Positions 1 through 46,532 of a stretch of DNA of 64,000 bases are shown piece after piece. The notes under the pieces were generated by a model. That model saw nothing but the letters and a program-made list of their open reading frames with translations, searched no databases and was not told the DNA's origin. Location of the stretch: the sequence record PP496436.1, one strand, 5' to 3'. Position 1 is the stretch's first letter, and each line of letters opens with the position of its first letter. A program made the translations under genes and the position numbers.

Positions 1-267
1 GTTGGACTTTGAACCCACCTGATACAGTTTCTTGTCCACGGTGAGGATGACGGTCTCATACTTGTCGAACTCCGCATCCGTCACGACAGGCACACCAGCG
101 TAGTAGGCGTCTTTCAGCAGTAGGTAGGCGTCGGCTAACTGCTTCTTTGGCACTTCTTTAGCCGCTTCCACCTGCATGGCTTTGCTCAAACTGGAGATGA
201 TACCGAACACGAAGTCTTTCAGTTCTTGGCGACCTTTCTTGGTGCCTATGGTGAACTTGGTCGCCAT
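1..267 (-). CDS. ligA: NAD+-dependent DNA ligase, N-terminal part (runs off the window edge)
   Basis: Manual translation from ATG at 267: MATKFTIG...LLLKDAYYAGVPVVTDAEFDKYETVIL...LYQVGS. This matches the LigA domain Ia pattern AYY-x-G-x-P-xx-D-x-E-F/Y-D. Not in the ORF track. Confidence 0.7.
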   Translation of the reverse strand, partial: MATKFTIGTKKGRQELKDFVFGIISSLSKAMQVEAAKEVPKKQLADAYLLLKDAYYAGVPVVTDAEFDKYETVILTVDKKLYQVGSKSN

Positions 268-25893: not shown

Positions 25894-26222
25894 TATTTGG
25901 TTTCTCCTGCTACTGACTCGATGGCAATGATCTCTGCACCGATGAGCAGGCTCTTCAGCCATTCTTCACCACGTTCCTCTTCGTCCTCGATTCGGACGTC
26001 TCCCATCATAATGAATGGGCAGTCATTGTGCGTCTCGAGCTTGTCAAAGACTGTGTTTACGGCGGCGTCGATAACATCCCAGCCGGTGCAGTTGCCCCCG
26101 ATCTTTACTTGCATCTCGGCGCGAAGCAATCCCGATGCGAAGGTCAATATAACGGTTTGGGTAACCTTGCCGCCGAACATTGCGAGAAAAGATCCGAGCT
26201 GTTCGTGATCATAGTTCAACAT
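25893..26222 (-). CDS. Hypothetical protein
   Basis: 109 aa, translationally coupled to its neighbours. Confidence 0.65.
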   Translation of the reverse strand: MLNYDHEQLGSFLAMFGGKVTQTVILTFASGLLRAEMQVKIGGNCTGWDVIDAAVNTVFDKLETHNDCPFIMMGDVRIEDEEERGEEWLKSLLIGAEIIAIESVAGETK

Positions 26223-31230: not shown

Positions 31231-31445
31231 GACTTATCTCCAGTCAGGGGTGTGACTCCCAGGTAATTGCCGATGCGCGGAATGAACAATGGGCAGGCAG
31301 TTACACAGACCCAAGCAACGGACATGGGGAACACTACCCCTTGCAACATCGACCAGCCACATGCAAACAGGATGATCAGACTAAGTACTGCGTAGTACGC
31401 GGACCAGATGATCAACCACCAAGCCTTACGGGACACGTTCTTCAT
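31227..31445 (-). CDS. Small membrane protein
   Basis: Start re-assigned to MKNVSRK (ATGA overlap with the helicase stop). Two hydrophobic segments. Confidence 0.6.
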   Translation of the reverse strand: MKNVSRKAWWLIIWSAYYAVLSLIILFACGWSMLQGVVFPMSVAWVCVTACPLFIPRIGNYLGVTPLTGDKS

Positions 31446-33049
31446 TTGTTCCACTCCTTGCGAGCCTTTAGCTGGGCTTCGGTAGGGGCCACCCGGAATC
31501 GTGTGTTCTGGGGCGACAAGTTCTTGAGCAGTGTGGTGGTCACACATTCGTGCGGCGTGATATGCAGCAGCAGGTCACTGGCTCGGGTATACGACACGTA
31601 TTGAACGTGGGGCAGCTGGCCGTCTTCACAGTCGAACCAGTCGTCGATCACCGCGACTCGTTCACTCTCCATCCCCTTCGCACCCCATGAGGTGTTAAGT
31701 TCCACACCTTTGCCGTGGTCATTGGCAATGATCTTGGTGATGAACGTCTTCACTTCGGCAGCGCTACCAAGGTCCCAGTTGGTGACGATGTACAACGCAG
31801 CGTCTGCGGCATCCTTGATCAGTGGTTCCTTTGCCTCCTTACGCAAATCATCCAACGCCTTAACGAAGTCAAGAGTGGACTTGCGACCACAACGCATGGC
31901 GACACCAATCACCTGCTCAAGCACTTTGGCTTTCTTGAAGGTAACCTCCAGTCCGCGATCCATGTACTCCAGCGCGATGCGGATCAGATGCTTGTTGCGG
32001 GCGCTGACCACACGCTGCACGTCGAACTTGATCATGCTCTTGATGCGGTACGGGTCCTTCTTGGTGTGCGCCGTCAGCATCTTGACTTGCCCACCCTCGG
32101 CGAAGGCTTCAAGCGGCACATCGGGGAATCGACCCTTGACGAACTCGACGATCTTCGATTTGGACCGGTACGTGGTGGTAGACGGCAATCTCTTAGCGTT
32201 GAACTCCTTGAACATGTCAGCCATGCCCGCGCTCAACCCACCTCGGAACGCATAGATGGCCTGCCATGGATCACCGACGAAGACGAACAACATGCCCGGC
32301 TTCAACCGGCGGAACAGGCGCAGTGTGTCATGCTGCACAAGGTTGAAGTCTTGGAACTCATCGACGAACAACACGTCCGGCAGGATCTTCGCCAGCGTGG
32401 CGTACTGCGTGCGGATAAAGCTGTTGGCCAGAACCATGCGGCTCATGTCGTTGAAGTCTACCGACGACGTGGTCTCATCACTGGCTTCCAGCGCCTCACA
32501 TATTTCAGGAAGCAGTGGCACCACCTTCTCATGGGGAATCAAGAAGCGGTACTTGCCGGTGATCAGTTCCTTGATCTGCTTGGGGTCGCTGTAGGGAATG
32601 CCCAATTCACGGATACGCTCTCCGTGCCAGCGGATGTCCTTGTTCACACGAGGCCCGTCTTGGGGGAACAGTGCGTCCACCACCTGGAACCACTTGTCGA
32701 ACATGATCGGTACGGCCTTGGCACCCGTCAACGTCTTGAACAACTCCAGCCCGTAGCTGTGCATGGTGGAACTGGAGACCGCCCGATCCTTAATACGCTG
32801 ATCGAACACCTTGGCGTTGTCCGTGTTGAACACGATGGCGCGCATGGTCAGCTTCGGGCACTCTTTACGAATGCGGCGGATAGTCTCGATGATCAGGGTG
32901 GTCTTACCCGATCCGGCACCGGCGTCGATGCCCACTGCGTCTTGTGGCTTGCCGGTGTACAAGTCTTTAGGCATCGACTTGGCTTTCTTCAAGATCTCGT
33001 TGAAGATGTCATTCTGTTGCTTGGACCAAACTCTTTCAGTAGTGGACAT
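31442..33049 (-). CDS. uvrD: SF1 UvrD/Rep-like helicase
   Basis: AGAGSGKTT, VDEFQD, VGDPWQAIYAFRG, TYRS, KGME, YVSYTRA. Confidence 0.92.
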   Translation of the reverse strand: MSTTERVWSKQQNDIFNEILKKAKSMPKDLYTGKPQDAVGIDAGAGSGKTTLIIETIRRIRKECPKLTMRAIVFNTDNAKVFDQRIKDRAVSSSTMHSYGLELFKTLTGAKAVPIMFDKWFQVVDALFPQDGPRVNKDIRWHGERIRELGIPYSDPKQIKELITGKYRFLIPHEKVVPLLPEICEALEASDETTSSVDFNDMSRMVLANSFIRTQYATLAKILPDVLFVDEFQDFNLVQHDTLRLFRRLKPGMLFVFVGDPWQAIYAFRGGLSAGMADMFKEFNAKRLPSTTTYRSKSKIVEFVKGRFPDVPLEAFAEGGQVKMLTAHTKKDPYRIKSMIKFDVQRVVSARNKHLIRIALEYMDRGLEVTFKKAKVLEQVIGVAMRCGRKSTLDFVKALDDLRKEAKEPLIKDAADAALYIVTNWDLGSAAEVKTFITKIIANDHGKGVELNTSWGAKGMESERVAVIDDWFDCEDGQLPHVQYVSYTRASDLLLHITPHECVTTTLLKNLSPQNTRFRVAPTEAQLKARKEWNK

Positions 33050-33113: not shown

Positions 33114-33176
33114 GAGCGTATAGCAATCGAATACGTGGAATTAGCCCTTAACGGCGTCCCCACTAGCGGAGAACAC

Positions 33177-34655
33177 ATGAAATCTGTAGCCGTTGACTAC
33201 CAAAAGATAGCCAAGGAATGCCAGTGTACCGAGCTGCCTTCTAAGGTAAGAGTTACGCGTGCACGGGTCTATCCAAACTTGAGGACGTGCCTACTCTTCC
33301 TCAAGTACGATGCCAAAGGCGATCTGGTGCAAGCCGAGATCACTGCGCCGTACGACACTTCCACCGAGCCAAAGGTGCGTGTGCTCAAGCACCCGGACAA
33401 GAAGTCCGACTTCCTTTCATTATATAGAGCGCTGATCCGCCATCAGATCATACCCGAGTCTATTCCGAAGAAAGGTAACGGGATTGCACCGACGCTGGAG
33501 GTAATCGGCACACTGGTGAGCCTGCTGCCGGAACGGGATGTCGAAACCTTCCGAACCCTGACCCCGGCCATCCAGACTGGCAGCGTCATGTACGTCCCTC
33601 TGGTTACGTCCCGGCCAATGCCCATGGTGCAACACTGGATACCCGTTGACCAGCATTCAGAGCTGGGCATGATCGAGCTGGTCGATACGGATAGCAAGCC
33701 TTTCCTTAATCAGTGGGTCAACAGGTTGAGCAACACCGCCACCGGTTATGTGATCTACACCCCGGAAGGCTCACACGGTCAGGAACTCGCCTGCTTCCGT
33801 GTGCCCAATGTGCAAGGAGAGGAACTGTGCGTGGTCAAGAAGGTGGACTTCACCCTTACCGTTGCTCGCACCCTCAAGCCGGTACTGACCGTCTCCACCA
33901 AGAGTACGCGTGCCGTATCCCGCATTCCCCTACCCCACTATCTGATGCTGCGCAATCACCACATCAAGGTTGGCACGGTTATTTCCCTGCGGCGTAACGA
34001 CCGAGGTGGGTTGGTGTACCATGAGACGGTGGCAGAGGAAGGGATGACACCTCTGCCACTGTGCCCACATTGCCATAGTGGATCTGTGCTGCGAAGTAGT
34101 AGCAATGACGTGTACTGCAATAACGATTCATGCCGAGGCCTAGCCATCGTGCGACTTCGCTACATCTTGAACAACAAGCTGGACGTCAAGTACCTGAGTC
34201 AGAACAAGGTGACGGCGTTGGTCAACGACAAGCAGGACCTGTTCAGCTTGCTCAAGACACCGACTCACCTATTGCGGCACAGAGCGGGCTTCGGTGCACG
34301 TACGGTGGATGCGCTGGAAGAGAAGCTGAACACTATCGCCGGTCTTCCACTGCACACGCTGGCCGAGATGTCCTGCGCTTTCTACAACGTGGGTGTGCCC
34401 CCGCTGGATGAGATGGTGTTCAAGAAGATCTTTTCCGTGATGTCGCTTGACCACCTGAAAGCACTGCCCTCCACCGGTAAGATGTACAGCCAGTTGCTCG
34501 ACATCGAAGGTATCCGCAACAACCGCGCAGTGGCTTTCCTCGCTGGTTGGCCTGCATTTCAACAGTGGATGATAGATCTTAACGCTGCCCTACAGTCTCG
34601 TAGCGCAATCTCCTCCACGGTAAATAACCCGAAACAAATTCGAGGTGTTAAATGA
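33177..34655 (+). CDS. Degenerate NAD-dependent DNA ligase-like protein lacking the KxDG adenylation motif
   Basis: OB-like VDFTLTVARTLKPVL..IKVGTVISLRR, C4 finger CPHC..VYCNNDSC, HhH-like GFGARTVDAL and IEGIRNNRA. Start re-assigned to ATG 33177 (GGAG RBS). Confidence 0.7.
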   Translation: MKSVAVDYQKIAKECQCTELPSKVRVTRARVYPNLRTCLLFLKYDAKGDLVQAEITAPYDTSTEPKVRVLKHPDKKSDFLSLYRALIRHQIIPESIPKKGNGIAPTLEVIGTLVSLLPERDVETFRTLTPAIQTGSVMYVPLVTSRPMPMVQHWIPVDQHSELGMIELVDTDSKPFLNQWVNRLSNTATGYVIYTPEGSHGQELACFRVPNVQGEELCVVKKVDFTLTVARTLKPVLTVSTKSTRAVSRIPLPHYLMLRNHHIKVGTVISLRRNDRGGLVYHETVAEEGMTPLPLCPHCHSGSVLRSSSNDVYCNNDSCRGLAIVRLRYILNNKLDVKYLSQNKVTALVNDKQDLFSLLKTPTHLLRHRAGFGARTVDALEEKLNTIAGLPLHTLAEMSCAFYNVGVPPLDEMVFKKIFSVMSLDHLKALPSTGKMYSQLLDIEGIRNNRAVAFLAGWPAFQQWMIDLNAALQSRSAISSTVNNPKQIRGVK

Positions 34656-35416
34656 ACAATCAAAACAGAACTCGTATCGCTGTGCTTGTCGGCGGCGGTC
34701 TGGACTCACATGCGTACATGGTATTGAAAGCCGACCAGCCTCAGACAGACTTCATTCATGTGGACTACGGCCAGCGGGTTGCAGTAGCCGAGAGAAACGC
34801 CGTGTTGCAAATGGCTGAGAAGCTGGGCATTGCCCGCAGCCGGGTGTACACGCTGATCTGCAACAAGAAGAATCACATGCGCAAGGTCAATGACGGTGTG
34901 GGTGTGTTGTTTGGCACCGGCCCGGTCGAGATGGACAATGCGTTTGTTAAGGGGCGTAACCTGTTCCTGATTCAGAAGGCCATCGAGCTGGGCTACGGTC
35001 ACGTGCACCTGACGCTGACCCAAGAGCGTGGCCGGATGTTCCCCGATGCCGATCTGGCATTCGTCCAGCTGGTGGACAACCTGATGCACCGCAGTTATGA
35101 CGTGAGGGTGTCCGCACCCTACATCATGGAAGACAAACACCGGGTGATGTTCAAGGCGTATCGGCACTGTCCCGAGTTCATCGATATGTCTTTCACGTGC
35201 TGGGTAGGTCCTTATGTGGAATGCGGAACGTGCCCGCACTGCTACAAGAAGGAAAAGATTCGAGCCGAGATGATCGTTGAGAAGATTGAATACGATCTCA
35301 GCAAGGATGAACGTGAGGCGCAGTGGGAGCAAGTCAAGGCAGGCTACGGCGACGCGTTGAAGCCCGCTGAGACCATCAACATGAACATTCAGGTTGTTGA
35401 CGGGGAAATGAAATGA
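34652..35416 (+). CDS. queC: QueC-like PP-loop ATPase (paralogue 1)
   Basis: GGGLDS, VDYGQR, FVKGRN, FPD, SFTCW..ECGTCPHC. Confidence 0.8.
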   Translation: MNNQNRTRIAVLVGGGLDSHAYMVLKADQPQTDFIHVDYGQRVAVAERNAVLQMAEKLGIARSRVYTLICNKKNHMRKVNDGVGVLFGTGPVEMDNAFVKGRNLFLIQKAIELGYGHVHLTLTQERGRMFPDADLAFVQLVDNLMHRSYDVRVSAPYIMEDKHRVMFKAYRHCPEFIDMSFTCWVGPYVECGTCPHCYKKEKIRAEMIVEKIEYDLSKDEREAQWEQVKAGYGDALKPAETINMNIQVVDGEMK

Positions 35417-36174: not shown

Positions 36175-36212
36175 GCGGGTAAATGGCTCGCAACTAATCC
36201 GGAGACACTAGA

Positions 36213-37031
36213 ATGACCACTACACCCCCGAAGATTCTTGTCGCATTCAGCGCTGGCACAGATTCAACCACTGCGGCCTACTACTATCGCAAGCTCGGCT
36301 ATCAGGTAACGCTGGCCGTGTTCGATGACGGCGCATGCAACGATCCGCTTGACCCTCTGTACGATCCGAACAAGCCGAAGGACTTGACCAACTTCTCGGA
36401 TGAGTTCTACGATTACGTACGGATTCACCAAGAGCATACGGAAGGTCATCTGCAGTTCGACTTCGTGGAGATTCGTTATCCGCAACTCGCATTGCTGGAA
36501 GCCAATAAGACGGCCAAGCCCGGTCGGGACAATGCGGCAGCAGCAGAGGCTGACGGCTTGGGCTTCTGGGTCGGCTTCAAGGGCCTGATGGCAATGTTGC
36601 TGATGAGCCACGGCGCCGCCAATGGTTACGAGGCAGTAGTCTTCGGCCACATGCCGTACAACAACCATTACGAAGATGAGCTGCCCCAGAACTTCGAGCT
36701 GCTGCGTCAGTACATGGTTACGGCCTATGGCAGCCGAGTGGAAATTCCTCAGATCTACCACCCGTTCTATCGACCTAATTTCGATACCAAGGAAAAGGTT
36801 ATTGAGCTGGCGCAGGCAATCGGCGTGCCCTTGCGAGATACCTATTCGTGCCGCCGAGGTGAAGTAGAAACCCGAGGCATCCTCCTGCCACTTCTGCGTG
36901 GCGGTAAATCCAACTACGTGAGCCCCACCTACCGCTGGAAGCATTGCGGTACGTGTGAGAACTGTGTCGAACGCAAGCGAGCCTTCGCGGCGCTGGGCAT
37001 GAAAGATCCTGCCCCTTATATGGAACATTGA
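36213..37031 (+). CDS. queC: QueC-like PP-loop ATPase (paralogue 2)
   Basis: FSAGTDST, HPF...TKEKVI, TYSCRRG, HCGTCENCVERKRAF..GMKDPAPY. Confidence 0.8.
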   Translation: MTTTPPKILVAFSAGTDSTTAAYYYRKLGYQVTLAVFDDGACNDPLDPLYDPNKPKDLTNFSDEFYDYVRIHQEHTEGHLQFDFVEIRYPQLALLEANKTAKPGRDNAAAAEADGLGFWVGFKGLMAMLLMSHGAANGYEAVVFGHMPYNNHYEDELPQNFELLRQYMVTAYGSRVEIPQIYHPFYRPNFDTKEKVIELAQAIGVPLRDTYSCRRGEVETRGILLPLLRGGKSNYVSPTYRWKHCGTCENCVERKRAFAALGMKDPAPYMEH

Positions 37032-37032
37032 T

Positions 37033-38022
37033 ATGGCCCTTTCAACCTGGCCGCTGACCGAAGGTGAACTCGGTCAGGGCCTCGTCAACGAACTGAATCG
37101 TACCAGCAAGGCGCTGGTGAACCGGAGTATGTGGTCTTTGCCATTGCTCCGGCGTTTGTTTTATCGGCGCACCGAGATTGGTGTCCCGGAGCTACTCCAC
37201 GTCTGTACCAGCATTCATCGGGGCAAGACTTACTTCTGCCTGTTGGTGAACTTCCGAGACGTGGTGATGGGCAATCCCGACCAGTATGGCTGGGATCTGG
37301 CGGGCCGCTGGTTGTTCTACGACGTTGACCTGCTGGACACCCCGCCGTTCAAAGCGGTGAAGAAGTCCATTGAGTCCCGTGCCACCAAGACCGAAGTGTC
37401 GTACGGTCAGGCTTTCCTCCCTTACGAGAAGAGTGATGAGGAATACGTCAAGTCCCTCAAGGGCAACTACAAGCCCCACATCTTCGGCGAGAAGTCCAAG
37501 CAGTATCGCGTCTTATCGTACTTCGGGCTGGCAGCGGTAGCCCCCTTCGCTCAAGCTCTGATGTGCTTCGGCATTCAGCGCGCCGAAAGGTTTATGGCCG
37601 AAGGGCAGAACGATGTCCTCCCCGAGTTGTACGACCTGCCACTGCAACTGGCGGGGCTCGGCAATGTCTCGAACACCCGCATCGGCTGCGTGACCATTGA
37701 AGTCGAAGGTACGATGGTAGGTGCTATCAGCATGTATGCTCAAGGTGCACTGGGCGACGCGGACATGCTGTATCTGCACGAGATCCTCATCGACCCGGAC
37801 CCCAAGTGGAAGAGCTTGTCGCTGGCTACTCTGCTGCACATTCATGCCGTCCTGTACTATCGCCGATCCCTCCAGAAAGACATAGTGTTCAACCTGGGCT
37901 ATAACTTCGCCGATGGGTATCAAGGTTACAAGGATGTCTTCCGTCCCAACGCCAACGCCTTCAACGTGTACACCGAGATGGACACCGAGCCCGGCGTACC
38001 ACTGTCCTGTTTCAAGGGGTAA
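37033..38022 (+). CDS. FemAB-like / dupli-GNAT acyltransferase paralogue 1
   Basis: SDEEYVKSLKGNYK, VGAISMY, SLSLATLLHIHAV, FNLGYNFADGYQGYKDVF. Confidence 0.55.
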   Translation: MALSTWPLTEGELGQGLVNELNRTSKALVNRSMWSLPLLRRLFYRRTEIGVPELLHVCTSIHRGKTYFCLLVNFRDVVMGNPDQYGWDLAGRWLFYDVDLLDTPPFKAVKKSIESRATKTEVSYGQAFLPYEKSDEEYVKSLKGNYKPHIFGEKSKQYRVLSYFGLAAVAPFAQALMCFGIQRAERFMAEGQNDVLPELYDLPLQLAGLGNVSNTRIGCVTIEVEGTMVGAISMYAQGALGDADMLYLHEILIDPDPKWKSLSLATLLHIHAVLYYRRSLQKDIVFNLGYNFADGYQGYKDVFRPNANAFNVYTEMDTEPGVPLSCFKG

Positions 38023-38025
38023 GAC

Positions 38026-39027
38026 ATGTACACTCCGTATTCCCAAAACAGCCTTATGCAGTCGATCCCTCTGGATGACCAAGGTACATTCGCCCATCCA
38101 CCGTACACGATGGAAGGAGAGTTCACCGACGTGTGGACGAATCCCAGCCTGTACGGGTTTGTTAGCTTGTTGAACGGTCAGAGCAATAGCCGGGCATATC
38201 GAGACTGGATGACCACCCACAATCTTCCAGCCCTGTTCCTCGGTCCGCACCATGAAGACAACTTCTGGTTTGAATTCAGCACTGGTCTCGATTCCAACTG
38301 CACGCTGGATTACAACGAGATCAACGTCCAAGGCAACCTGCAGGACTTCCTTGGGAGATTGACGTCATCTCGCCGTCGCTCCGTGCTCAAGGCAAAGGAA
38401 ACGGATACAATGATCCACAAGGCAGGCTCGGTAGCCAACTTCAACCTGTATCATCCGGTAGAGGGTAGGCTGTATAGTCTGACCGTGATTCACGAACGCC
38501 GGGTGATGAAAGATATTTCCGAGTTTATCGAATCGAAACTCTGGAGTATGAAGCATACGCCTACTGACCTCACGTACGGTGCATTCACCACTCTGATGGA
38601 CTACATCCGGTTGAAGCAGCGAGATGACACGCCGCTGGGCCACCGGTTGCGCAACGTACAGCTCTTGGTTATCCGAGATGAACGCTCCGGGTTTATCGTG
38701 TCGGTACACCTGGTGGCGATCACCACGTTGAAAGATGAGTCCATGAACCCCATCAAGACGTACATGCACTCCTTCGCACGCATCACTGTTCTCCCTGCAC
38801 GCATCGCCTTACTTGCGTTGATCAAGGCGGTTCAAGAGTTAAACGTCACCAGTCAGTATGCGTCCCGTGCACTGGCGAAGATCGACTATCTTGATGTGAG
38901 CAACGTGGTGCTGTCCGAGCGAGAGCAGTACAAGTCGGACTTCTTCACCGGCAAATGCCAAGTGCGTGCGTGGGCATCCCCGGCGCTGCTGGAACGGCAG
39001 TTACCTTTCGTCACGCCGATCCCGTAA
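38026..39027 (+). CDS. FemAB-like / dupli-GNAT acyltransferase paralogue 2
   Basis: NLQDFLGRLTSSRRRSVLKA ... EQYKSDFF. Confidence 0.45.
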   Translation: MYTPYSQNSLMQSIPLDDQGTFAHPPYTMEGEFTDVWTNPSLYGFVSLLNGQSNSRAYRDWMTTHNLPALFLGPHHEDNFWFEFSTGLDSNCTLDYNEINVQGNLQDFLGRLTSSRRRSVLKAKETDTMIHKAGSVANFNLYHPVEGRLYSLTVIHERRVMKDISEFIESKLWSMKHTPTDLTYGAFTTLMDYIRLKQRDDTPLGHRLRNVQLLVIRDERSGFIVSVHLVAITTLKDESMNPIKTYMHSFARITVLPARIALLALIKAVQELNVTSQYASRALAKIDYLDVSNVVLSEREQYKSDFFTGKCQVRAWASPALLERQLPFVTPIP

Positions 39028-39081
39028 CTCTGTAAATGATGGGAACAGCCCCACCATCACTTCATCTCTAGGGTAGTTCCC

Positions 39082-40134
39082 ATGCAAGACTTCGATAAGA
39101 TAATGATCGATAGTAGTTTGACATCCAATCTGGTGTACGCAGGGTTGGGTAACTTGATCACGCCCCGCGCACTTGACCTGCTGATCGAACATCAGGCTGC
39201 ACTGGAAAACGTATACGCCAATCTGGAAACGGCCTATCAGATTACCCCACCCTTCCCCTGTGAAGCTGCATTCAATTCCCCTGACAAAGATCCTGTGCTG
39301 GTCGCCGACTATCTGAATGCTACTCCCGCCATCCGTTGCGGAGAGCTGGCTGGATTCGAGGCAAAGCCCGGCAGTTACTACCATGCGCCCGCCGCTGGTA
39401 TCTCCCCGGAACATCGCATTGACGTACGTGGTATGTCTTTGCGTGAGTTCGACCACTATCTGGTTGAGCGTAAGGAAGTATCCCGTATCACTACCAATCT
39501 GGTGGCCGACAAGTTCCGCTGTGAGACGCATGTGTACAAAGTGGATGAAGATCATATCCTGATCCATGACGCCGAACGAGTTGGGATCAGCCAGACGGAC
39601 TTCCGCCGCATGTGGGCGCAGACCCGCCGCCGGGAAATCGCTGAAAACTATCTGCAGTACATGCCCATCGAAGATTCCGCCAAGGATGATCAGGTGGTGC
39701 GACTGATCAACGAAGACGTAGCACGGGTGTTCGCCCAGAACGTCGACTACGACCGCATGATTCCGCCCGAGCTGATCTTCGATGGTCAGGGCAAGCCGGT
39801 GCTGACCGTGCTGAAAGATTGCAACGCCAAGGTATTGGGCATTGGTGTGTACGTCATCTACAAGTCAGCTGACCCAGAGCATGACAGCGAACTGCACTGG
39901 CGTGGCGCTTTCTACGATCACGAAGATCCTCGCGTAGCATCCATGGGCATTGAACACGCTCTGGTTGCCAGCGCACTGCACACAGCGTACGCCTGCAACG
40001 CGGTCCTCTATCTGACCAAGGCACCTAAGTCCGTGTGCGACGCATGGAAGACGGAAGTGCACCAAGGTTACGGTCTGGTCCGTAATGCGATGCCGGAACT
40101 GTCTGACACCCCTTACATTCTGGCTATCCAGTAA
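39082..40134 (+). CDS. FemAB/ATE-like dupli-GNAT acyltransferase paralogue 3
   Basis: EFDHYLVE; KVLGIGVY..WRGAFYDHEDPRVASMGIEHAL..VLYL, which resembles the aminoacyl-transferase C-terminal GNAT. Confidence 0.45.
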   Translation: MQDFDKIMIDSSLTSNLVYAGLGNLITPRALDLLIEHQAALENVYANLETAYQITPPFPCEAAFNSPDKDPVLVADYLNATPAIRCGELAGFEAKPGSYYHAPAAGISPEHRIDVRGMSLREFDHYLVERKEVSRITTNLVADKFRCETHVYKVDEDHILIHDAERVGISQTDFRRMWAQTRRREIAENYLQYMPIEDSAKDDQVVRLINEDVARVFAQNVDYDRMIPPELIFDGQGKPVLTVLKDCNAKVLGIGVYVIYKSADPEHDSELHWRGAFYDHEDPRVASMGIEHALVASALHTAYACNAVLYLTKAPKSVCDAWKTEVHQGYGLVRNAMPELSDTPYILAIQ

Positions 40135-40167
40135 ATAGCCGGTAACTCCATCCATTGAGGTACTTCC

Positions 40168-42252
40168 ATGAAATCCGTGAACCCCATCTTCAAACACGTT
40201 CCCCAGTTCGACTGGCCTGTCATTCCCCGTGCGCAGTGGGAAGAGATCATCAAGGGAAAAGAGCATGTGATGTTCGACTCCTTCTCGCAGCTCGCTCAGG
40301 TGCTGGCTATCCCGGTGAGCAGTTACCAGTTCTACTTCGAAGATGGGTCCACGTTGTTCGCCGGTCCCGAAGCAACCTTCACCGCCGCCCCCTATCCGTT
40401 GTATCAGGATCTGGAATTCGTCCTGACCCCGGATGAGACGTTGGTGCCGGGTCTTGCACTGGATACCAAACCGTGGGGCCTGTACACCGACGAATGGGTG
40501 GACAACTACGAAGGTGCGGACAAGGAAGACATCGGCAACAAGACCGGGTTCGAATTCATTCCGCTGTCGGACGCTTTGAAACTGGTGGTCCTCAACACGG
40601 AGACCATGCAGCTCCAGTACACTGCAATCGAGAGCTTCACGTACGACGGCGTGACTTACGTATACCTGCTGGCCGATGGCGTGTGCTGGGTACTGGCGGG
40701 CAAGTCCGGTGGTCTGGTTGCCAGCGAGCATGACAAAGGCGCGGCGTTCATCATGGTGTCCCATCCCGAGTTCGCCGGGTGCAGCGTAGACAACATGTAC
40801 CCAAGTGAGTTCGGTGAAGCGGAAGCGACGTTCTACGTTCAAGACGAGGAACACAATTACCTGGACGCGGCTAACCGCATCTTCGAGGAAGCCAAGGACG
40901 TAGGCGCTGGCACGTTCCTGACCATTGAGACCGGTGATGGATTGCCGACCGCGCTGGCGTACAACCTGCGGTACAGTGATGTGGCCCACGTTAATCTGCC
41001 GATGCACAACATCCACCAGTTCACTTCTCTTCACGTACGACTGGGTGAGACGCCTAACTTCTCCGAGGCCCCGGAAGCGTGCCGCATGAAAGAGGTGATG
41101 GAGTATCTGGCGGACCCTGAGTCCCCGGTAGATCATTACTGGTCGGCCATCATGGTACTGGAGAAGAACTTCCCCGGTTTCGCCGACGCCCTGAAAGACT
41201 CCAGTGTCCCGACCCGTGACATCGTGCACTCCAAACAGGCGTTCAGCTTGGAGATCGATCGCCAGTTCGGCAAGGAAGTGGCAAGCAAGATCGGGCTGAA
41301 CACTGGCGTATTCGCTCAAGTGAAAGACCGTGATGAATGGCTGGTACGCAAACACGAGTTCCCTACCGATAAGGTGGCCGTCAAGTACAACACCAAACAC
41401 TTCATCGGCATCTTCGACAAGGACGAGGTATCGAAGTCCATCAACATGTGGCTGGCTGGTCAACCCGGAGAGTCGCTGATGATCGAAGAGTACTTCGGTG
41501 AGGGCAATCAGGAATTCAACCTGTGCTACGTGATCAACGAAGATTTCGTGCAGCCGACGCTGTTCCTGTGCGAAGTCAACAAGATCCTCGGCAATGACAC
41601 CGGCGGCAAAGGTGGCAACACGCTGGCCTGCCATGATGCTCGTATTAACAAGTACCCTGAGTTCTTCGAGCCGGTCAATAATGCGCTTGCTAACCTGCAT
41701 GAGCACGTGGAAGGTGTGAAGGGCTGGGTTGACCTGAGCTTCATGGTTCGCGACGGTATCCCATACTTCACAGAGTGGTGCATTCGCATCGGCTGCTCCA
41801 ACAACGCCACCATCGTGCGCCAGATGGAGACCCCGCTCGACGTCCTGTTGACTAACGTGGTCAACAAGGTGCATACCGAGCTGTCTTGGAAACACTCCAT
41901 GTCTGTCAGCGTGGACATCTACAGCATGCCGCTATCCGCAGGCAACGACGCCAACATGCAGTTCACCGACTCGCTGACCACTCCGGTAGAGATGGTGTCC
42001 CCGCTCAATCTGGAACTGGCGGCGGAGAGTTTCTTCGACCCGATTGATTCGGCCTGGAACGCGGTGTACGACGGCTACATCGTCGAGGCGTATAATCGCT
42101 ATGGCACCGTCTCGGGGTACTCCACCAACTGGAACTTCGCCTGCAATGCGGCGTATAATCACTTGAAAGATCAGTCGGTGTTGTACGGAGCGTACCGCGA
42201 AGCGCCTGCCCACCATGACCCACTGACTCTGTTCCCTTTCCTCAAGGCGTAA
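40168..42252 (+). CDS. ATP-grasp amide ligase, PurD-like C-terminal half with a long N-terminal region
   Basis: LMIEEYF..QEF..EVNKILGNDTGGKGGNT..GWVDLSFMV..PYFTEWCIRIG aligns with PurD IEEFL..QDHKR..DTGPNTGGMG..VIEFNCRFG. Confidence 0.7.
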   Translation: MKSVNPIFKHVPQFDWPVIPRAQWEEIIKGKEHVMFDSFSQLAQVLAIPVSSYQFYFEDGSTLFAGPEATFTAAPYPLYQDLEFVLTPDETLVPGLALDTKPWGLYTDEWVDNYEGADKEDIGNKTGFEFIPLSDALKLVVLNTETMQLQYTAIESFTYDGVTYVYLLADGVCWVLAGKSGGLVASEHDKGAAFIMVSHPEFAGCSVDNMYPSEFGEAEATFYVQDEEHNYLDAANRIFEEAKDVGAGTFLTIETGDGLPTALAYNLRYSDVAHVNLPMHNIHQFTSLHVRLGETPNFSEAPEACRMKEVMEYLADPESPVDHYWSAIMVLEKNFPGFADALKDSSVPTRDIVHSKQAFSLEIDRQFGKEVASKIGLNTGVFAQVKDRDEWLVRKHEFPTDKVAVKYNTKHFIGIFDKDEVSKSINMWLAGQPGESLMIEEYFGEGNQEFNLCYVINEDFVQPTLFLCEVNKILGNDTGGKGGNTLACHDARINKYPEFFEPVNNALANLHEHVEGVKGWVDLSFMVRDGIPYFTEWCIRIGCSNNATIVRQMETPLDVLLTNVVNKVHTELSWKHSMSVSVDIYSMPLSAGNDANMQFTDSLTTPVEMVSPLNLELAAESFFDPIDSAWNAVYDGYIVEAYNRYGTVSGYSTNWNFACNAAYNHLKDQSVLYGAYREAPAHHDPLTLFPFLKA

Positions 42253-42255
42253 TCC

Positions 42256-43416
42256 ATGAGCACTCCATTCCAAGAGTTCACCCTAGAGGGGTGGATTCAA
42301 CATATGAATCAGGATCAAATCTGGAAGCGGTACGCCAACGATCATCCTAACAGGGTTGAGTTCAGCCCTGTTTGGCGTGACGAGATGTATCGGTTGATGG
42401 TACAGTTCAAAGAGCTGCTGCCGATGTCGTTCTCCAATCCGGTGTACGGCTTCACCGAAGGCTATCTGGAAGGGTTCGGACTCCAGCCCTTCTACGGCGA
42501 TGATCCTTTCAATCCGATGGTTCAGCCTCTTAGCCATCCTCTGGTTCACGTGGGCTTCCCACTCACACTGGACGAGATCGTAGCGAGCGTGCGGGACTGG
42601 CAGTCCCTGAGCGATCACCTGGGGCGTCCGCAACTGGTCGATACATTCGAGCCGGTTTCACTGCTAGCGCGCAACCTGTACGAGCCTAACGCGCTGCTGG
42701 CCGTACGGAACAAGGAAGAGATCGTGATGAACGGGGGCACGCCCGCGAACTACTTCCTCTGGCTGAATAGCCCGGTCACCGAACTCAAAGACGACTTCGA
42801 CGTTTATCTGGCCAGCCTGACCAAGAAGCGCCGCTACAAAGTGAAGCAGGCGTTGGCGACGGTAGGCACCGAAGAGAATCCCCGGATCAGCGTCAGCACC
42901 GGGTCTCGTTTCGGCGAAGGGCTGTTGTCCGATCAGGTGGACAGCATCCTTGCGACGTTCGAAGATCCAGTGGACATCGAGTGCATGCTTCTTCAGTTGC
43001 TATTCGGGGTTGCAACCTGCAATACCCATCCGCATCTTGTCGATCTGGTGTGTGCAGACCAGCAGTTGGGGATCTTCATCAAGCGTAACGGCCACACGAT
43101 GAACTTCCTCTACAACCGCGACCCGGACAACCGCGCTGATTCAGGCATAAACCTGCTTACCCAGTACGTGCGCCATCTGCACATGAACCGACCGGAAGGC
43201 GTTATGTACGTGGACCCGACATGCCGATATCGGCCTGACGAGGACAGTATGAACACCTACAAGCGGGTGATCACCAACGAGAACCGGTATCACCCAATGC
43301 CGTTCGTCTCGGCTGACCCTGCGCACATCGAAGGTGTGCTTACCCCGGCGTTCATTGCAGGCCATTGGCAGATGTCGGCGTCCAACGGACCGGCCAACCC
43401 CGAGATGATGGAGTAA
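42256..43416 (+). CDS. FemAB-like / dupli-GNAT acyltransferase paralogue 4
   Basis: DFDVYLASLTKKRRYKVKQAL ... MNTYKRVI. Confidence 0.6.
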   Translation: MSTPFQEFTLEGWIQHMNQDQIWKRYANDHPNRVEFSPVWRDEMYRLMVQFKELLPMSFSNPVYGFTEGYLEGFGLQPFYGDDPFNPMVQPLSHPLVHVGFPLTLDEIVASVRDWQSLSDHLGRPQLVDTFEPVSLLARNLYEPNALLAVRNKEEIVMNGGTPANYFLWLNSPVTELKDDFDVYLASLTKKRRYKVKQALATVGTEENPRISVSTGSRFGEGLLSDQVDSILATFEDPVDIECMLLQLLFGVATCNTHPHLVDLVCADQQLGIFIKRNGHTMNFLYNRDPDNRADSGINLLTQYVRHLHMNRPEGVMYVDPTCRYRPDEDSMNTYKRVITNENRYHPMPFVSADPAHIEGVLTPAFIAGHWQMSASNGPANPEMME

Positions 43417-43418
43417 CC

Positions 43419-44366
43419 ATGGCAAAGTCCAAAATGAGACGGTTGGCGATCAACCACATCTATGACTTCTACCCGTTGTATCAGGTGATGTACGGGCGTG
43501 GCATGGAGACCAAAGCGTTCGAGGTATCCAAGTTCGCCAAGATGGTTATGGACTTCGAAGCCTCGACCAGTACTCGCCGGAAGTGGGACGTGCTGGAGCC
43601 CTTCAGCGGTATCAGTGAACACGAACACTTCTTCGCTGCGACCGGCCTGAACATCGAGCACTACACCGGCATGGACATTGTGGTTCCAGATGGGGCCACG
43701 AACGTCATTCAAGGGGACATCATCACCGACACCCTTCCGTTTCACGTCAACGCAGTGTTCGCCTTCTACTACAGCTTGCAGAATGTACGGGACGCGGCGA
43801 CCGGCATGCACACGCGGGCCAAGCTGGTGGAGTTCTTCGACAACATCATTGGTCATCTGCAAGTAAATGCGAACAAGAGCCGTATGCCCGCAGTGTTCGC
43901 GTTCCACCTTGACCAGCCTGAAGATCCTAATTACTATCTGACGTCCCGTGCCGACGTTGGAGGTGAACAGTCATGGACTGCACCCGCGTGTGGTCTGCTC
44001 GGGCAGTGGGTCAAGTGCAAGCCGACTGACACTCTGGAAGTCAAGTGCAATCTGGATACCTGGTACAACCGCGTGCAGTGCACAGCGTATGATCAGGCAG
44101 AGGACATTCAGATTCTGGTAAATGGGAAAGTAACCGCTGTCGTAGACATCGAGCAGCCGTTCACCCATCGGGTCTGGACCGAGCATGAGGTCATCGATAT
44201 CCTGCGGGGTCTGGACTACAATCTGCACTTCCACATGTACAACGGCACCCTCTCCAATTACGACTTCTTGATGACCCGGCTGGACGACAAGCCCGTTCCC
44301 GGCGATGAAGAGTCTAATACTAATCAGATGACAACTGATATGTTGGTTGTCGTTAATCCGAGGTAA
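43419..44366 (+). CDS. Class I SAM-dependent methyltransferase-like paralogue 1
   Basis: VLEPFSG, YTGMDI, IQGDI, VFAFYYSL. Start re-assigned to MAKSK. Confidence 0.6.
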   Translation: MAKSKMRRLAINHIYDFYPLYQVMYGRGMETKAFEVSKFAKMVMDFEASTSTRRKWDVLEPFSGISEHEHFFAATGLNIEHYTGMDIVVPDGATNVIQGDIITDTLPFHVNAVFAFYYSLQNVRDAATGMHTRAKLVEFFDNIIGHLQVNANKSRMPAVFAFHLDQPEDPNYYLTSRADVGGEQSWTAPACGLLGQWVKCKPTDTLEVKCNLDTWYNRVQCTAYDQAEDIQILVNGKVTAVVDIEQPFTHRVWTEHEVIDILRGLDYNLHFHMYNGTLSNYDFLMTRLDDKPVPGDEESNTNQMTTDMLVVVNPR

Positions 44367-44368
44367 GC

Positions 44369-45286
44369 ATGGCTAAGCCCAAGGTTCCAACCAAGACGAT
44401 CCCCACGTTGTACCAAGACTGGGGATTGTACAGCGCCATCTGCGAACTGCCGCAGGAGACGATGCTGATGATGTCGCGCTTCGTGGCAGACCGAACCATT
44501 GAGCACGCTGAGCGTATCGATCAGGTAATGGTCGAGATCATGGAACCCTTCAGCGGCCCAATCCCGTATTACGAGCCAGACATCCGCAGCTTCCTGACCC
44601 GCGCTAAGCTTGATCTGTACACGTACGATCACGTCGAATACCTGGATCACGGCAAACTGTCGGAAGACAACGGCATCATCATCGGTGACATTACCACCAT
44701 CGATCTGAAGCAGAAGTACGACGTCATCTACGGCAGTTACGGCAGCTTGGCCTGCCTGCTGCTGGATCAGACGCACAACAAAGCGTACGAGAAGTCGCAC
44801 GCGGCGCTGGTCAACATCCGCAACCACCTGAAACCCAACGGCATCTTCATCCTGAACGCCAACGGGTCCAGTGAGAGCCTACTGAACAACCTGCTGAACT
44901 CCGATGAGCCGGATCAGGAGATTCGCGTTCGTCCGGGATCGCAGCTTGGCAAGAAGTTCGGCATCAAGCCGGACAGCAACGCGCTGCTTCGCTTCACCTA
45001 TCACGTGGAGTACGACCGACGCACCACCTGCACCATGTGCCACTACAGCGATATGGTGCTGTCTGTAAATGGGGTTGACATCCAGCGCTGGGAGGTGGAA
45101 TCCCCGACGTATCTTGCTCCGCTGGACGAACCCGAACTAATTCGAATGGCAGGTATGGCGGGTTTCAATCTGGACAACACTGAGTTCTACGGATTGGACA
45201 CCACCGGTTATCCTGCCTTCTTCAAAATGGATACGGTCTGCGACGGGTCATGGTCACCCGCCGAGTTCGTAGTCTTTCGCACCTAA
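44369..45286 (+). CDS. Class I SAM-dependent methyltransferase paralogue 2
   Basis: IMEPFSG, IGDITTIDLKQKYDVIYGSYGSL, NIRNHLKPNGIFIL, ELIRMAGMAGF..FYG. Confidence 0.75.
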   Translation: MAKPKVPTKTIPTLYQDWGLYSAICELPQETMLMMSRFVADRTIEHAERIDQVMVEIMEPFSGPIPYYEPDIRSFLTRAKLDLYTYDHVEYLDHGKLSEDNGIIIGDITTIDLKQKYDVIYGSYGSLACLLLDQTHNKAYEKSHAALVNIRNHLKPNGIFILNANGSSESLLNNLLNSDEPDQEIRVRPGSQLGKKFGIKPDSNALLRFTYHVEYDRRTTCTMCHYSDMVLSVNGVDIQRWEVESPTYLAPLDEPELIRMAGMAGFNLDNTEFYGLDTTGYPAFFKMDTVCDGSWSPAEFVVFRT

Positions 45287-45296
45287 CGAGGTTCCT

Positions 45297-46532
45297 ATGA
45301 GCGTTATCATCCCCACCGTAGCGATGGAGAGTGGTCAGCCAGACATGATCATTCAAGGCTGTTCCACTGGTCGCGTCTCTATGGCCGAGCCTAACGAGAG
45401 CGCCAAACCCAAGTCTTCCAAGAAGCTGTACGAACGTGAAGACCTGATGGCGTACGACAGCGAGTCGGAGCACTGGCAGAAGCAGTTGGCCCGCCGCTAC
45501 GCTCACCATGGTGAGATGGTCGGTGTGTTGAACAACGTCGAGGTGGTGCCGGAAGCCACCTACCAGAACTTCGACATGAAGATCACTCCGTACACCGCGC
45601 AGTTGATGGATCAGAACGACCCCAACTGCCCGATTCGTCTGCAGTACATGCCGACCAACAAAGAGCTGGAGTCGATTCAGCGTGAAGAGACCATGCACAA
45701 CGAGCTGGGCGAGGAAGAGGACACCGTCCCCGGTACCTCGGTCGTGCACCGCTACCCGCGCCGCGTCTTGTTCCTGACCACCACCCAGTGCGCTAGCTTC
45801 TGCCGTTACTGCACCCGTGCACGCATCGTCTCTCACGGCGGTGAAGCGGCTATCACCAAGAAGCACCTGGACGCCAGCATCGACTACATCGCCTCGAACA
45901 AGGACATAGAAGACGTGTTGCTGTCCGGCGGTGACCCGTTCATCCTGCCAGACAACAAGCTCGACGAGATCCTCGGTCGTATCCGCGCCGAAGCACCTCA
46001 CGTTCGCTTCCTGCGTATTGGTAGCCGACTGCCGGTACAGATGCCGACTCGTATCACTCCAGAGCTGTGCGAGATTCTGGAACGCCACAACGTCAACATG
46101 GTCAACATCCATGTGAACCACCCGAAAGAGGTCACCCCACTGCTGGCCTCCCGGATGAAGATGTTGCGCAAAGCTGGCGTGATGATCGGTAATCAGGCGG
46201 TCCTCCTGAAAGGCGTGAACGACTCCATCGAGGTGATGACCGAGCTGTGCTTGCGCATGGTCGAGATGGGTGTGCGTCCGTACTACGTCTACTCCAACGA
46301 TCCGGTTGCGCAGGCCGCACACTTCACCGTCTCGCTCCGTGATATGCTGGACATCAACGAAGGCATGCGTGGCTTCCTGTCCGGCCCGGCAATGCCCACC
46401 TTCGTGGTGGACGGCGTGGGTGGCTTGGGCAAGATGCCCGTGCAGAAAGAGTATGTGACAGTACTGGGGAGTGGTAAGATCTGGGCCACCAACTTCGAAG
46501 GAATGACCACTCGCATGCCCCATCTGGAGTAA
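45297..46532 (+). CDS. kamA: Lysine 2,3-aminomutase (radical SAM, PLP)
   Basis: HRYPRRVLFL, CASFCRYCTR (CxxxCxxC), LLSGGDP, RIGSR, HVNHPKE, NQAVLLKGVND, PYYVYSND, PTFVVDGVGGLGKMP. Confidence 0.93.
   Translation: MSVIIPTVAMESGQPDMIIQGCSTGRVSMAEPNESAKPKSSKKLYEREDLMAYDSESEHWQKQLARRYAHHGEMVGVLNNVEVVPEATYQNFDMKITPYTAQLMDQNDPNCPIRLQYMPTNKELESIQREETMHNELGEEEDTVPGTSVVHRYPRRVLFLTTTQCASFCRYCTRARIVSHGGEAAITKKHLDASIDYIASNKDIEDVLLSGGDPFILPDNKLDEILGRIRAEAPHVRFLRIGSRLPVQMPTRITPELCEILERHNVNMVNIHVNHPKEVTPLLASRMKMLRKAGVMIGNQAVLLKGVNDSIEVMTELCLRMVEMGVRPYYVYSNDPVAQAAHFTVSLRDMLDINEGMRGFLSGPAMPTFVVDGVGGLGKMPVQKEYVTVLGSGKIWATNFEGMTTRMPHLE

Follow-up and report, generated by a model that had tools for sequence, protein, structure and literature searches.

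In the NAD-dependent DNA ligase LigA, the OB-fold, zinc-finger and helix-hairpin-helix (HhH) domains wrap duplex DNA. The short NAD+ ligases of the E. coli LigB type and of the entomopoxvirus type are LigA relatives with trimmed accessory domains; these remain active ligases, with both domain Ia and the lysine of KxDG in place. Pseudoenzymes of DNA-ligase descent are, to our knowledge, essentially undescribed. Another rearrangement of the LigA domain set is the split heterodimeric NAD+ ligase of T5-like phages (PR1, PDB IDs 9HU3 and 9I5I), in which an intact catalytic subunit and its partner together give a full ligase. Phages are also described that combine FolE, QueD, QueE and QueC with DpdA (Hutinet et al., PMC10516641); the word "ligase" is absent from the main text of that study.

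The window analyzed here is a stretch of 64,000 nucleotides, bases 124001-188000 of the record of Pseudomonas phage vB_PpuM-Illi-2 (PP496436.1), a jumbo phage that is lytic on P. putida KT2440, a benign and tractable system. Illi2_00183 (33177..34655, plus strand, stop included), listed as hypothetical in the record, encodes a LigA-derived protein of 492 amino acids devoid of the ligase catalytic motifs. The ORF is a confirmed gene. A GGAG ribosome-binding site (33168..33171, plus strand) is read directly in the sequence 5 nt upstream of the ATG at 33177, and orthologues displaying 91-100% identity occur in all nine related P. putida phages. Between Illi-2 and Peetri, pN/pS is 0.105 for the whole gene, and purifying selection is seen on every domain over the full length. 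Literature searches returned no paper on Illi2_00183 or on a ligase-like component of a deazaguanine system, and no chemical data on the DNA of these phages. We propose, with a probability of roughly 0.45, that this protein is a descendant of NAD-dependent DNA ligases that has turned into a non-catalytic DNA-binding protein and serves the co-expressed enzymes, QueC-like and tailoring, as their DNA-binding or targeting subunit.

The LigA-like C-terminal half and its family

Illi2_00183 has no Pfam or PHROG family match, and its scores against NCBIfam TIGR00575 (27.1 bits, cut-off 444) and NF005932 (20.1 bits, cut-off 369) are low. Its residues ~214-480 are clearly a LigA OB fold, a C4 zinc finger and an HhH domain, in the LigA order, as an earlier note on this DNA had read from the letters alone. 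A phmmer search of 1.84 billion representative proteins yielded 17 matches; those outside the family are proteins of 560-780 amino acids that align as LigA, down to an E-value of 4e-7, carry KxDG and TRGDG (in A2) and are all confined to residues ~205-470 of Illi2_00183. The family profile searched against the PDB retrieves the LigAs of Thermus, Deinococcus and E. coli over the OB-zinc-HhH region (E-values of 7e-16 to 6e-11), together with weak matches to both subunits of the split phage ligase; the fold matches include short viral NAD-ligases of about 500 amino acids. The AlphaFold model is confident over residues 214-480, and the best seven Foldseek matches of this model in the PDB are all LigA (E-values of 9e-15 to 2e-11). 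The top TM-scores are reached with E. coli LigA, at 0.50 for the nicked-DNA-adenylate complex (2owo_A) and 0.49 for 4glx_A, as compared to 0.32-0.35 for NAD-bound or DNA-free LigA (5tt5, 1dgs, 1v9p, 8ak4).

From the N-terminal to the C-terminal side, the OB-fold domain (residues 214-290, 33816..34046, plus strand) is modeled with five strands at a pLDDT of about 87-90 (65 in the block 241-250), matches the LigA OB profile and displays a pN/pS of 0.012; relatives of Illi2_00183 match the Pfam OB domain PF03120. The C4 zinc finger (residues 291-320, 34047..34136, plus strand) is formed by C296, C299, C314 and C319, which do not vary among the five family members compared (5/5) and align to C408, C411, C426 and C432 of E. 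coli LigA. The HhH domain (residues 321-480, 34137..34616, plus strand), identified by AlphaFold, by alignment and by the TIGR00575 match that spans residues 295-395, is helical with a pLDDT of about 77-94. Its canonical glycines are found only in the G-F-G hairpin 371-373, those of the later hairpins being substituted. In the alignment, R333/T334 of E. coli LigA become V/A in Illi-2, and the hairpin residues G521 and G553 become D and R. We take these to be DNA-contact positions of the OB and HhH domains; since several of them are substituted, DNA binding could be altered. The protein stops 12 residues past the HhH domain and has no BRCT domain.

Among the 1.84 billion representatives, the family comprises the nine P. 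putida phages, two Vibrio phages and one metagenomic lineage, arranged in four lineages that share 20-27% identity. Scans of IMG/VR that started from the family alignment, from the Vibrio protein and from Illi2_00183 itself identified no relatives, and k-mer protein searches, with a single sequence or a profile, returned only the own cluster of Illi2_00183; two other short family members surfaced only in an exhaustive HMMER scan. A separate, intact LigA occurs in both groups of GenBank phages that possess the family, those of P. putida and those of Vibrio. In Illi-2 it is the canonical Illi2_00140, with its first 89 codons at 1..267 of the window. The earlier note had rightly seen a LigA N-terminus there, though on the minus strand. 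These codons hold the domain Ia motif Y-Y...D-A-E-F-D, and KLDG lies at residue 128 of the protein. The term paralogue that the earlier note used for Illi2_00183 is misleading: Illi2_00140 matches it with an E-value of 0.003 over the HhH region only, the C4 zinc finger kept by Illi2_00183 is missing from the resident LigAs of Illi-2 and of Vibrio phage GR11A, and the LigA-like family is a clade of its own, older than the split between the Pseudomonas and Vibrio phages. A recent duplication of the resident LigA was rejected on these grounds.

Gene neighborhood and the 7-deazaguanine genes

In Illi-2, Illi2_00183 is the first of twelve tightly spaced genes that run in one direction from 33177 to 46532, and in this phage it does head the array that had been called a modification operon. 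Its TGA (34653-34655) shares the letters ATGA with the start codon of the following gene, at 34652, an overlap already noticed from the sequence that couples the LigA-like gene translationally to QueC-like protein 1. This first PP-loop protein (34652..35416, plus strand) matches Pfam QueC with an E-value of 5.6e-19 and NCBIfam QueC with 62 bits (cut-off 150). The second (36213..37031, plus strand; Pfam QueC, 4e-12) shares 45% identity with the second QueC of the metagenomic lineage L011. Both are above the Pfam cut-off and far below the NCBIfam equivalog cut-offs. The rest of the co-directional array (37033..46532, plus strand) is supported by its annotation and by orthologues in GR11A; it includes an ATP-grasp protein (40168-42252, plus strand) and a lysine-2,3-aminomutase-like radical SAM protein (45297-46532, plus strand). 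Of 50,697 phage records, 11 contain the ATP-grasp gene, h694, and the records with the LigA-like gene are precisely these 11. When the 329- and 694-residue neighbors were searched as single sequences against the PDB, the result was just a weak match to the ATP-grasp protein PurD. The GNAT proteins that had been placed in this operon are not recovered: three proteins of 329-350 amino acids have no Pfam, PHROG or NCBIfam match.

The remaining 7-deazaguanine genes are found elsewhere in the phage. The Illi-2 genome encodes FolE (Pfam, 3.8e-39), a PTPS (QueD-like) match (2.8e-8) and a protein annotated as "QueE-like radical SAM domain" whose sole Pfam match is Fer4_12. Outside the window, Illi2_00101 (80825-82195 of the record) is a TGT-like candidate DNA transglycosylase: it scores 32.9 bits against PF01702 (cut-off 26.3), over the C-terminal part of the model only, and displays a CxCxxC...H zinc motif. 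Judged by these matches, Illi-2 appears to possess the preQ0-pathway gene set (FolE, QueD, QueE, QueC) and a TGT-family protein. The Vibrio relatives harbor a canonical QueC and an ArcS2 (DUF5591) protein beside the LigA-like gene. The LigA-like protein was also considered as a stand-in for a missing DNA transglycosylase, a role made unnecessary by the presence of Illi2_00101.

The linkage is conserved across lineages. In 4/4 of them the LigA-like gene lies at most one gene upstream of the QueC-like pair, and the order helicase, LigA-like gene, two QueC-like genes is kept; the tailoring genes downstream vary by lineage. The helicase is UvrD/Rep-like (31442..33049, minus strand, divergently transcribed; Pfam and PHROG matches, synteny). 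It adjoins the LigA-like gene in Illi-2 and lies two to four genes off in the three other lineages, with a DHFR gene and small ORFs in between. Topoisomerase II genes follow the array in Illi-2, GR11A and L011.

This environment would also suit an accessory protein of replication or repair that binds nicks or duplex DNA. Such a factor would work with the helicase or the topoisomerase II, in nick marking, nick protection or helicase loading, and would have no role in base modification. The constant position of the helicase on the upstream side, the topoisomerase genes behind the array and the origin of the LigA OB and HhH domains as nick-recognition modules all speak in its favor. However, the LigA-like gene is coupled to and co-directional with a QueC-like gene, and divergent from the helicase. 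Furthermore, phages that share the canonical LigA (Rhizobium RHEph12-type, Motura, phiRSL1 and PaBG) have no match to the LigA-like protein, which thus falls outside the core replication genes of the lineage. The accessory role is rather unlikely on this evidence. The adjacency of these genes may, for its part, partly reflect the shared ancestry of the two phage groups, as the helicase and topoisomerase genes are also syntenic.

The N-terminal half and the missing ligase motifs

Residues 1-213 (33177..33815, plus strand) are probably a degenerate nucleotidyltransferase (adenylation) domain, as suggested by hhalign and by pN/pS. The match to the LigA nucleotidyltransferase profile is weak and collinear (score 26.4, P 0.003), with an identical register in both subfamilies; this score is reached by one of 100 block shuffles, and P is about 0.003-0.01. 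In the full-length AlphaFold run, this region displays a pLDDT below 50, and a rerun of residues 1-220 with LigA adenylation domains added to the alignment reached a mean pLDDT of 44.7. Foldseek found nothing significant with the latter model, jacalin-type lectins ranking first and LigA adenylation domains appearing with an E-value of about 1. The N-terminal profile had no match among PDB sequences up to an E-value of 10. The earlier note had proposed a degenerate adenylation region, to be checked by structure prediction against LigA: the loss of the catalytic residues is borne out, and the LigA fold is recovered for residues 214-480, the two models of this half being of low confidence.

The start of Illi2_00183 corresponds to M79 of E. 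coli LigA, at the PMLSL motif; ~75-80 N-terminal residues of LigA are without counterpart, and domain Ia is therefore absent. A regular-expression search for K-x-D-G found the motif nowhere in Illi2_00183 and its four relatives (five family members). In three independent MAFFT alignments and in hhalign, N34-L-R-T37 (33276..33287, plus strand) takes the position of motif I, K-L-D-G in LigA, and the catalytic lysine is absent; the relatives display G-L-L-G, G-L-S-G and N-F-G-G there. At the LigA catalytic positions, Illi-2 has N for K115, R for D117, T for R136 and T for D285. Across the family, K115 is replaced by N or G, D117 by R, L, S or G, R136 by T or A, D285 by T, K or Y, and K290 by Y, V, A or F. 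The aligned E173 is substituted too, and so are the TRGDG and motif IV residues. The absence of KxDG, domain Ia and BRCT noticed from the letters is thus confirmed, and the view of a catalytically dead LigA-derived protein holds well, its OB, zinc and HhH domains being certain. As the DNA-gripping parts are kept and the catalytic lysine is lost, Illi2_00183 most likely binds DNA instead of sealing it.

It might still be an enzyme, if the N-terminal domain had been remodeled to a new active site, binding for example a 7-deazapurine or a nucleotide or acting on DNA-linked intermediates, or if ligation relied on a partner subunit or on some lysine outside the canonical motif. Purifying selection acts on the N-terminal half no less strongly than on the rest of the protein (pN/pS 0.09); D60, P93, P105, G111 and K174 are invariant across very divergent members, and the motif V lysine is retained in the three Vibrio-type lineages. 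Split phage NAD-ligases do exist, and in the Vibrio-type lineages an ORF of 147-161 amino acids overlaps the start of the LigA-like gene. This small ORF was rejected as a missing ligase piece, as it displays no ligase similarity and has no counterpart in Illi-2; the 153-residue "DNA ligase" Illi2_00046, examined as such a counterpart, is unrelated to it by BLAST and matches only a short PHROG. Moreover, the aligned nucleotidyl-transfer residues are all replaced, save for glycines, and differently so in each lineage, a pattern typical of relaxed catalytic constraint, and Illi-2 and both Vibrio phages have a complete LigA at another locus. A surviving or new catalytic activity is distinctly improbable.

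Possible function and comparison with known systems

The earlier note had envisaged a decoy against ligase-targeting defences. Such an anti-defence decoy or sponge would blunt a host defence by imitating the LigA of the host or by covering nicked DNA. Apart from the fact that phages are known to make mimic proteins, nothing supports this very improbable role: we know of no defence that targets LigA, literature searches found none, and the gene sits inside a biosynthetic array and not among early anti-defence genes. It is equally hard to believe that the protein is a transcriptional regulator of its own operon, despite its first place in the Illi-2 array and its DNA-binding domains, because DNA binding by the LigA HhH and OB domains lacks sequence specificity, 492 amino acids is large for a regulator, and the gene is not first in the arrays of the Vibrio-type lineages.

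According to the proposal of a DNA-targeting subunit, residues 1-213 would be a decayed adenylation domain incapable of forming ligase-AMP, and the protein would clamp or dock on phage DNA via its HhH, zinc and OB domains. Bound in this way, it would target the co-expressed QueC-like and tailoring enzymes, which may convert or decorate a 7-deazaguanine base already present in the DNA, a putative modification. It is possibly a DNA-encircling scaffold that recruits the modification enzymes, as the genomic context suggests. A bolder and tentative version holds that the pseudo-ligase has been domesticated to clamp DNA, as a non-catalytic subunit, within a new machinery of 7-deazaguanine hypermodification, which would make an undescribed amino-acid-bearing deazaguanine in DNA. 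Perhaps at nicks or immediately behind the fork, the clamp would then offer duplex DNA to the QueC-like amidoligases and to lineage-specific tailoring enzymes, namely the ATP-grasp and lysine-aminomutase-like radical SAM proteins in Illi-2 and the Vibrio phages.

If this bolder version is true, Illi2_00183 would be the first pseudo-ligase acting in DNA base modification. As a DNA-handling subunit, it would illustrate how enzymes of free-base biosynthesis reach duplex DNA, and the array, with its two divergent QueC-like proteins, ATP-grasp ligase and radical SAM protein, would be likely to give rise to a new DNA base, which could matter for the evasion of restriction and as a tool in nucleic-acid chemistry. 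Should it instead be a partner of the helicase, it would represent a replication accessory of a new type, one that binds nicks or duplex DNA.

Compared with LigA (E. coli 2OWO; Thermus filiformis 1DGS and 1V9P), Illi2_00183 has the same OB-zinc-HhH order with detectable homology, and its N-terminal region, which begins at the PMLSL motif, follows the adenylation domain in weak collinearity. Unlike LigA, it has no KxDG lysine, domain Ia or BRCT, and the residues of motif I, TRGDG and motif IV are replaced. The LigB and entomopoxvirus types have likewise been trimmed, but in a different manner: Illi2_00183 has kept the zinc finger and lost the catalytic core. In contrast to the split ligase of T5-like phages, it has no adenylation partner, and a full LigA is encoded elsewhere in the genome. 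With regard to the phage 7-deazaguanine systems, the ATP-grasp and lysine-aminomutase-like enzymes of the Illi-2 array are not mentioned in the available part of Hutinet et al. (PMC10516641). Alongside them, the Illi-2 genome shows members of the described set: FolE, QueE-like and TGT-like proteins, a PTPS match and the QueC-like pair.

A LigA-derived protein without the ligase catalytic motif

The window aligns at 100% identity with Pseudomonas phage vB_PpuM-Illi-2 (PP496436.1), its base 1 being record base 124001. Illi-2, a 201-kb lytic myovirus infecting P. putida KT2440, comes from an Estonian phage collection, where it is placed in jumbo-phage cluster G3 (PMC7616413). The collection paper is silent on Illi2_00183, on ligases and on QueC, and treats restriction-modification as general background only. 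Illi2_00183 (33177-34655, + strand) is an annotated CDS for a 492 amino-acid "hypothetical protein", with a ribosome-binding site, GGAG, read 5 nt ahead of its ATG. The protein is derived from LigA, with the DNA-gripping domains intact and without the ligase catalytic motif.

Neither Pfam nor PHROGs returns a match for this protein. An exhaustive phmmer search of 1.84 billion representative proteins yielded 17 matches: leaving aside its own cluster and two proteins of 437 and 440 amino acids, all are 560-780 residues long, align as LigA and carry KxDG and TRGDG, and the similarity is confined to residues ~205-470 of Illi2_00183 (E down to 4e-7 for that database). A five-member family profile matches LigA sequences taken from crystal structures of the Thermus, Deinococcus and E. 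coli enzymes (7e-16 to 6e-11), beginning where the OB domain begins and reaching into the HhH domain, and the NCBIfam LigA model covers residues 295-395 (1.3e-6, 27 bits vs a cut-off of 444). AlphaFold2 predicts residues 214-480 confidently (pLDDT mostly 76-94): an OB barrel of five strands is followed by a small zinc knuckle and then by a domain made up entirely of helices. The top seven Foldseek matches in the PDB are LigA throughout (E 9e-15 to 2e-11), the highest TM-scores being those of E. coli LigA 2owo_A, a nicked-DNA-adenylate complex (0.50), and 4glx_A (0.49). In a viral structure library, the top match is a 440-residue protein, of the size of the short members, followed by viral NAD-ligases. 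The zinc cysteines C296, C299, C314 and C319 correspond to E. coli C408, C411, C426 and C432 and do not vary among the five members compared. The LigA-like OB, C4 zinc finger and HhH elements recognized in the earlier note are thus borne out by profile, fold and structure prediction alike. The E. coli residues R333/T334 and the hairpin residues G521 and G553, DNA contacts according to the E. coli mutational literature, are V/A, D and R in Illi2_00183; these changes in the OB and HhH domains suggest that its way of binding DNA may differ from that of LigA.

The catalytic lysine motif, domain Ia and BRCT are missing, as the earlier note had stated. A regular expression for K-x-D-G finds none in Illi2_00183 or in four relatives. 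The Illi2_00183 sequence begins at the counterpart of E. coli M79, in the PMLSL motif at the head of the adenylation domain, and therefore lacks the entire NMN-binding domain Ia; it ends 12 residues past the HhH domain, so the BRCT domain is absent as well. On the defining catalytic features it falls outside LigA, yet its sequence points clearly to descent from LigA.

The first 213 residues are probably a decayed adenylation domain. Three separate MAFFT alignments give the same collinear register, in which the LigA motifs P-M-L-S-L, K-L-D-G, Y-x-x-G-x-L...T-R-G-D-G, N-x-x-T-I-x-x-I-P, D-G-V-V-I-K and A-F-K-F-P face, respectively, M-K-S-V, N34-L-R-T37, Y-D-A-K-G-D-L-V-Q-A-E-I-T-A-P-Y-D, I-R-H-Q-I-I-P, T189-G-Y-V-I-Y and C-F-R-V-P. 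Aligned by hhalign with a profile of LigA adenylation domains, the family N-termini score 26.4 (P 0.003), a value attained by 1 of 100 block-shuffled controls (mean 14.6, maximum 27.9); a reversed control scored 15.2 on an earlier profile for which the real alignment gave 23.7. Vibrio-type N-termini alone score 29.7 (P 0.0007), Pseudomonas-type alone just 15.7. Both alignments independently place x-L-x-G on K-L-D-G; T-G-Y-V falls on D-G-V-V in the Pseudomonas-type one, the Vibrio-type one ending before motif IV. The motif III assignment moved between alignments. On the collinear alignment the nucleotidyl-transfer residues are all replaced, and differently from lineage to lineage: across the four lineages, K115 by N, G, G, N; D117 by R, L, S, G; R136 by T, A, A, A; D285 by T, K, K, Y; and K290 by Y, V, A, F. 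At the motif V lysine, the Pseudomonas phages have R and the other lineages K. By contrast with the collinear register, a search of the PDB with an HMM built from the family N-termini gave no match up to E 10, and AlphaFold gives a pLDDT <50 for this half in both a full-length and a dedicated run, the latter model having no significant fold match. The structural comparison with LigA invited by the earlier note thus yields LigA matches for residues 214-480, the N-terminal half being modelled at low confidence in both runs.

Selection, distribution and relation to the resident ligase

Orthologues of Illi2_00183 in eight further cluster phages share 91-100% protein identity. Against the most distant one, from Peetri, overall pN/pS is 0.105 (0.090 in the first 213 codons, 0.012 in the OB domain, 0.175 in the HhH domain); the whole protein, its motif-less part included, is therefore kept by selection.

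The protein coexists with a real ligase. The separate LigA N-terminus reported at window positions 1-267 is confirmed as the first 89 codons, on the minus strand, of Illi2_00140 (PP496436.1 122288-124267), a 658-residue canonical LigA with Pfam adenylation and OB matches and KLDG at residue 128. Both Vibrio phages, GR11A and GR7B, likewise encode an intact separate LigA. Illi2_00140 and Illi2_00183 resemble each other in the HhH region only (E 0.003). A small tree built on the OB-Zn-HhH region groups the five LigA-like proteins in one clade (support 0.97) and the two canonical phage ligases in another (0.99), indicating that the LigA-like protein is an old, separate lineage, older than the split of these phage groups. 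The "catalytically dead NAD-ligase paralogue" of the earlier note thus stands as regards LigA descent and loss of the catalytic motif; as a recent copy of the resident ligase it is ruled out.

Illi2_00140 has one cysteine and the GR11A canonical ligase (637 amino acids, L013 175-2088) two, hence neither has a C4 zinc finger: the canonical enzymes carry KxDG without the finger, whereas their LigA-like relative retains all four cysteines. Elsewhere in the genome, outside the window, a 153-residue "DNA ligase" (PP496436.1 40513-40974, L007) adjoins dihydrofolate reductase. Its annotation appears doubtful, since the 67-position phrog_13916 is its sole match and Pfam gives none.

Of 50,697 phage records, only 11 encode the LigA-like protein: those of the nine P. 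putida phages and those of Vibrio coralliilyticus phages GR11A and GR7B, whose versions (437 and 440 amino acids, about 25% identity) bear the annotation "ligA". One further lineage, P0016, lies on a 66-kb metagenome contig; IMG/VR scans added no relatives. The order is the same in all four lineages, a divergent UvrD/Rep-like helicase, the LigA-like gene and two QueC-like PP-loop genes, which upholds the proposed linkage; an ArcS2/DUF5591 gene is interposed before the QueC-like genes in the Vibrio phages only. In Illi-2, the coupling is translational, the TGA of Illi2_00183 and the following ATG sharing ATGA, as previously noted. Beyond the QueC-like pair the genes vary: Illi-2 and GR11A share an ATP-grasp protein (36% identity), a 386-residue protein and a lysine-2,3-aminomutase-like radical SAM protein (51% identity), and Illi-2 and P0016 share 329-, 333- and 315-residue proteins and closer QueC-likes. 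Thus, what stays constant is the helicase to one side of the LigA-like gene and the QueC-like pair to its other side. The phage genomes with the ATP-grasp gene are precisely the 11 that carry the LigA-like gene, and neither gene occurs in the phages whose canonical ligases are closest (Rhizobium RHEph12-type, Motura, phiRSL1 and PaBG). In the three Vibrio-type lineages, an ORF of 147-161 amino acids overlaps the LigA-like start (L002 5382-5825; L003 5022-5477; L011 2813-3298), and this ORF matches no family and has no homologue encoded by Illi-2, genome-wide.

Deazaguanine genes and the proposed role

About 35 kb downstream, beyond the window, Illi-2 encodes FolE and a radical SAM protein resembling QueE. 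Scanning 39 of its hypothetical proteins against Pfam as a pool gave one PTPS/QueD-type match (2.8e-8), in a protein of at least 193 amino acids, and one TGT match, Illi2_00101 (PP496436.1 80825-82195, - strand, outside the window; L005 5829-7196; PF01702, 32.9 bits vs a cut-off of 26.3). With its zinc motif CNCPVC...H, the latter is a candidate DpdA DNA transglycosylase, left unannotated in the record. From these matches, Illi-2 appears to hold the full toolkit for putting 7-deazaguanine into DNA.

The QueC-like proteins (34652-35416 and 36213-37031, both +) pass Pfam QueC and score far below the NCBIfam equivalog cut-off (62 and 23 bits vs 150), which suggests an altered chemistry. The second has faint matches to thiouridine synthases and QatC. 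Between them, a 253-residue ORF (35413-36174, +) with a Gly/Pro-rich, low-complexity middle matches no family, and neither the Vibrio nor the metagenomic lineages have an equivalent. Three consecutive proteins (329, 333 and 350 amino acids; 37033-40134, +) match no family, the "GNAT" label given to them being unsupported, and show no detectable mutual similarity; the sole Pfam GNAT among the window genes scanned is an unrelated gene (26222-27046, -). Further downstream, the PurD-like ATP-grasp (40168-42252, +; NCBIfam 2.4e-7) and aminomutase-like (45297-46532, +) genes hint at an amino-acid-bearing deazaguanine derivative.

Our preferred reading, to which a probability of 0.45 is given, is that Illi2_00183, presumably unable to adenylylate, would hold duplex or nicked DNA through its HhH, Zn and OB elements in the fashion of LigA, and would provide the DNA-binding subunit to enzymes completing or decorating a deazaguanine that is already in DNA. 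A replication or repair accessory to the adjacent helicase is rather unlikely: although that gene is a constant neighbour, it is divergently oriented, and translational coupling is to the QueC-like gene. Remodelling of the N-terminal domain for a new catalytic or ligand-binding role seems improbable. A decoy or an operon regulator is very improbable.

A literature search found no phage modification system described as including a pseudoenzyme derived from a ligase. In PMC10516641, where 7-deazaguanine toolkits comparable to that of Illi-2 are described for other phages, the word "ligase" is absent from the main text and the DUF5591 protein is named ArcS2.
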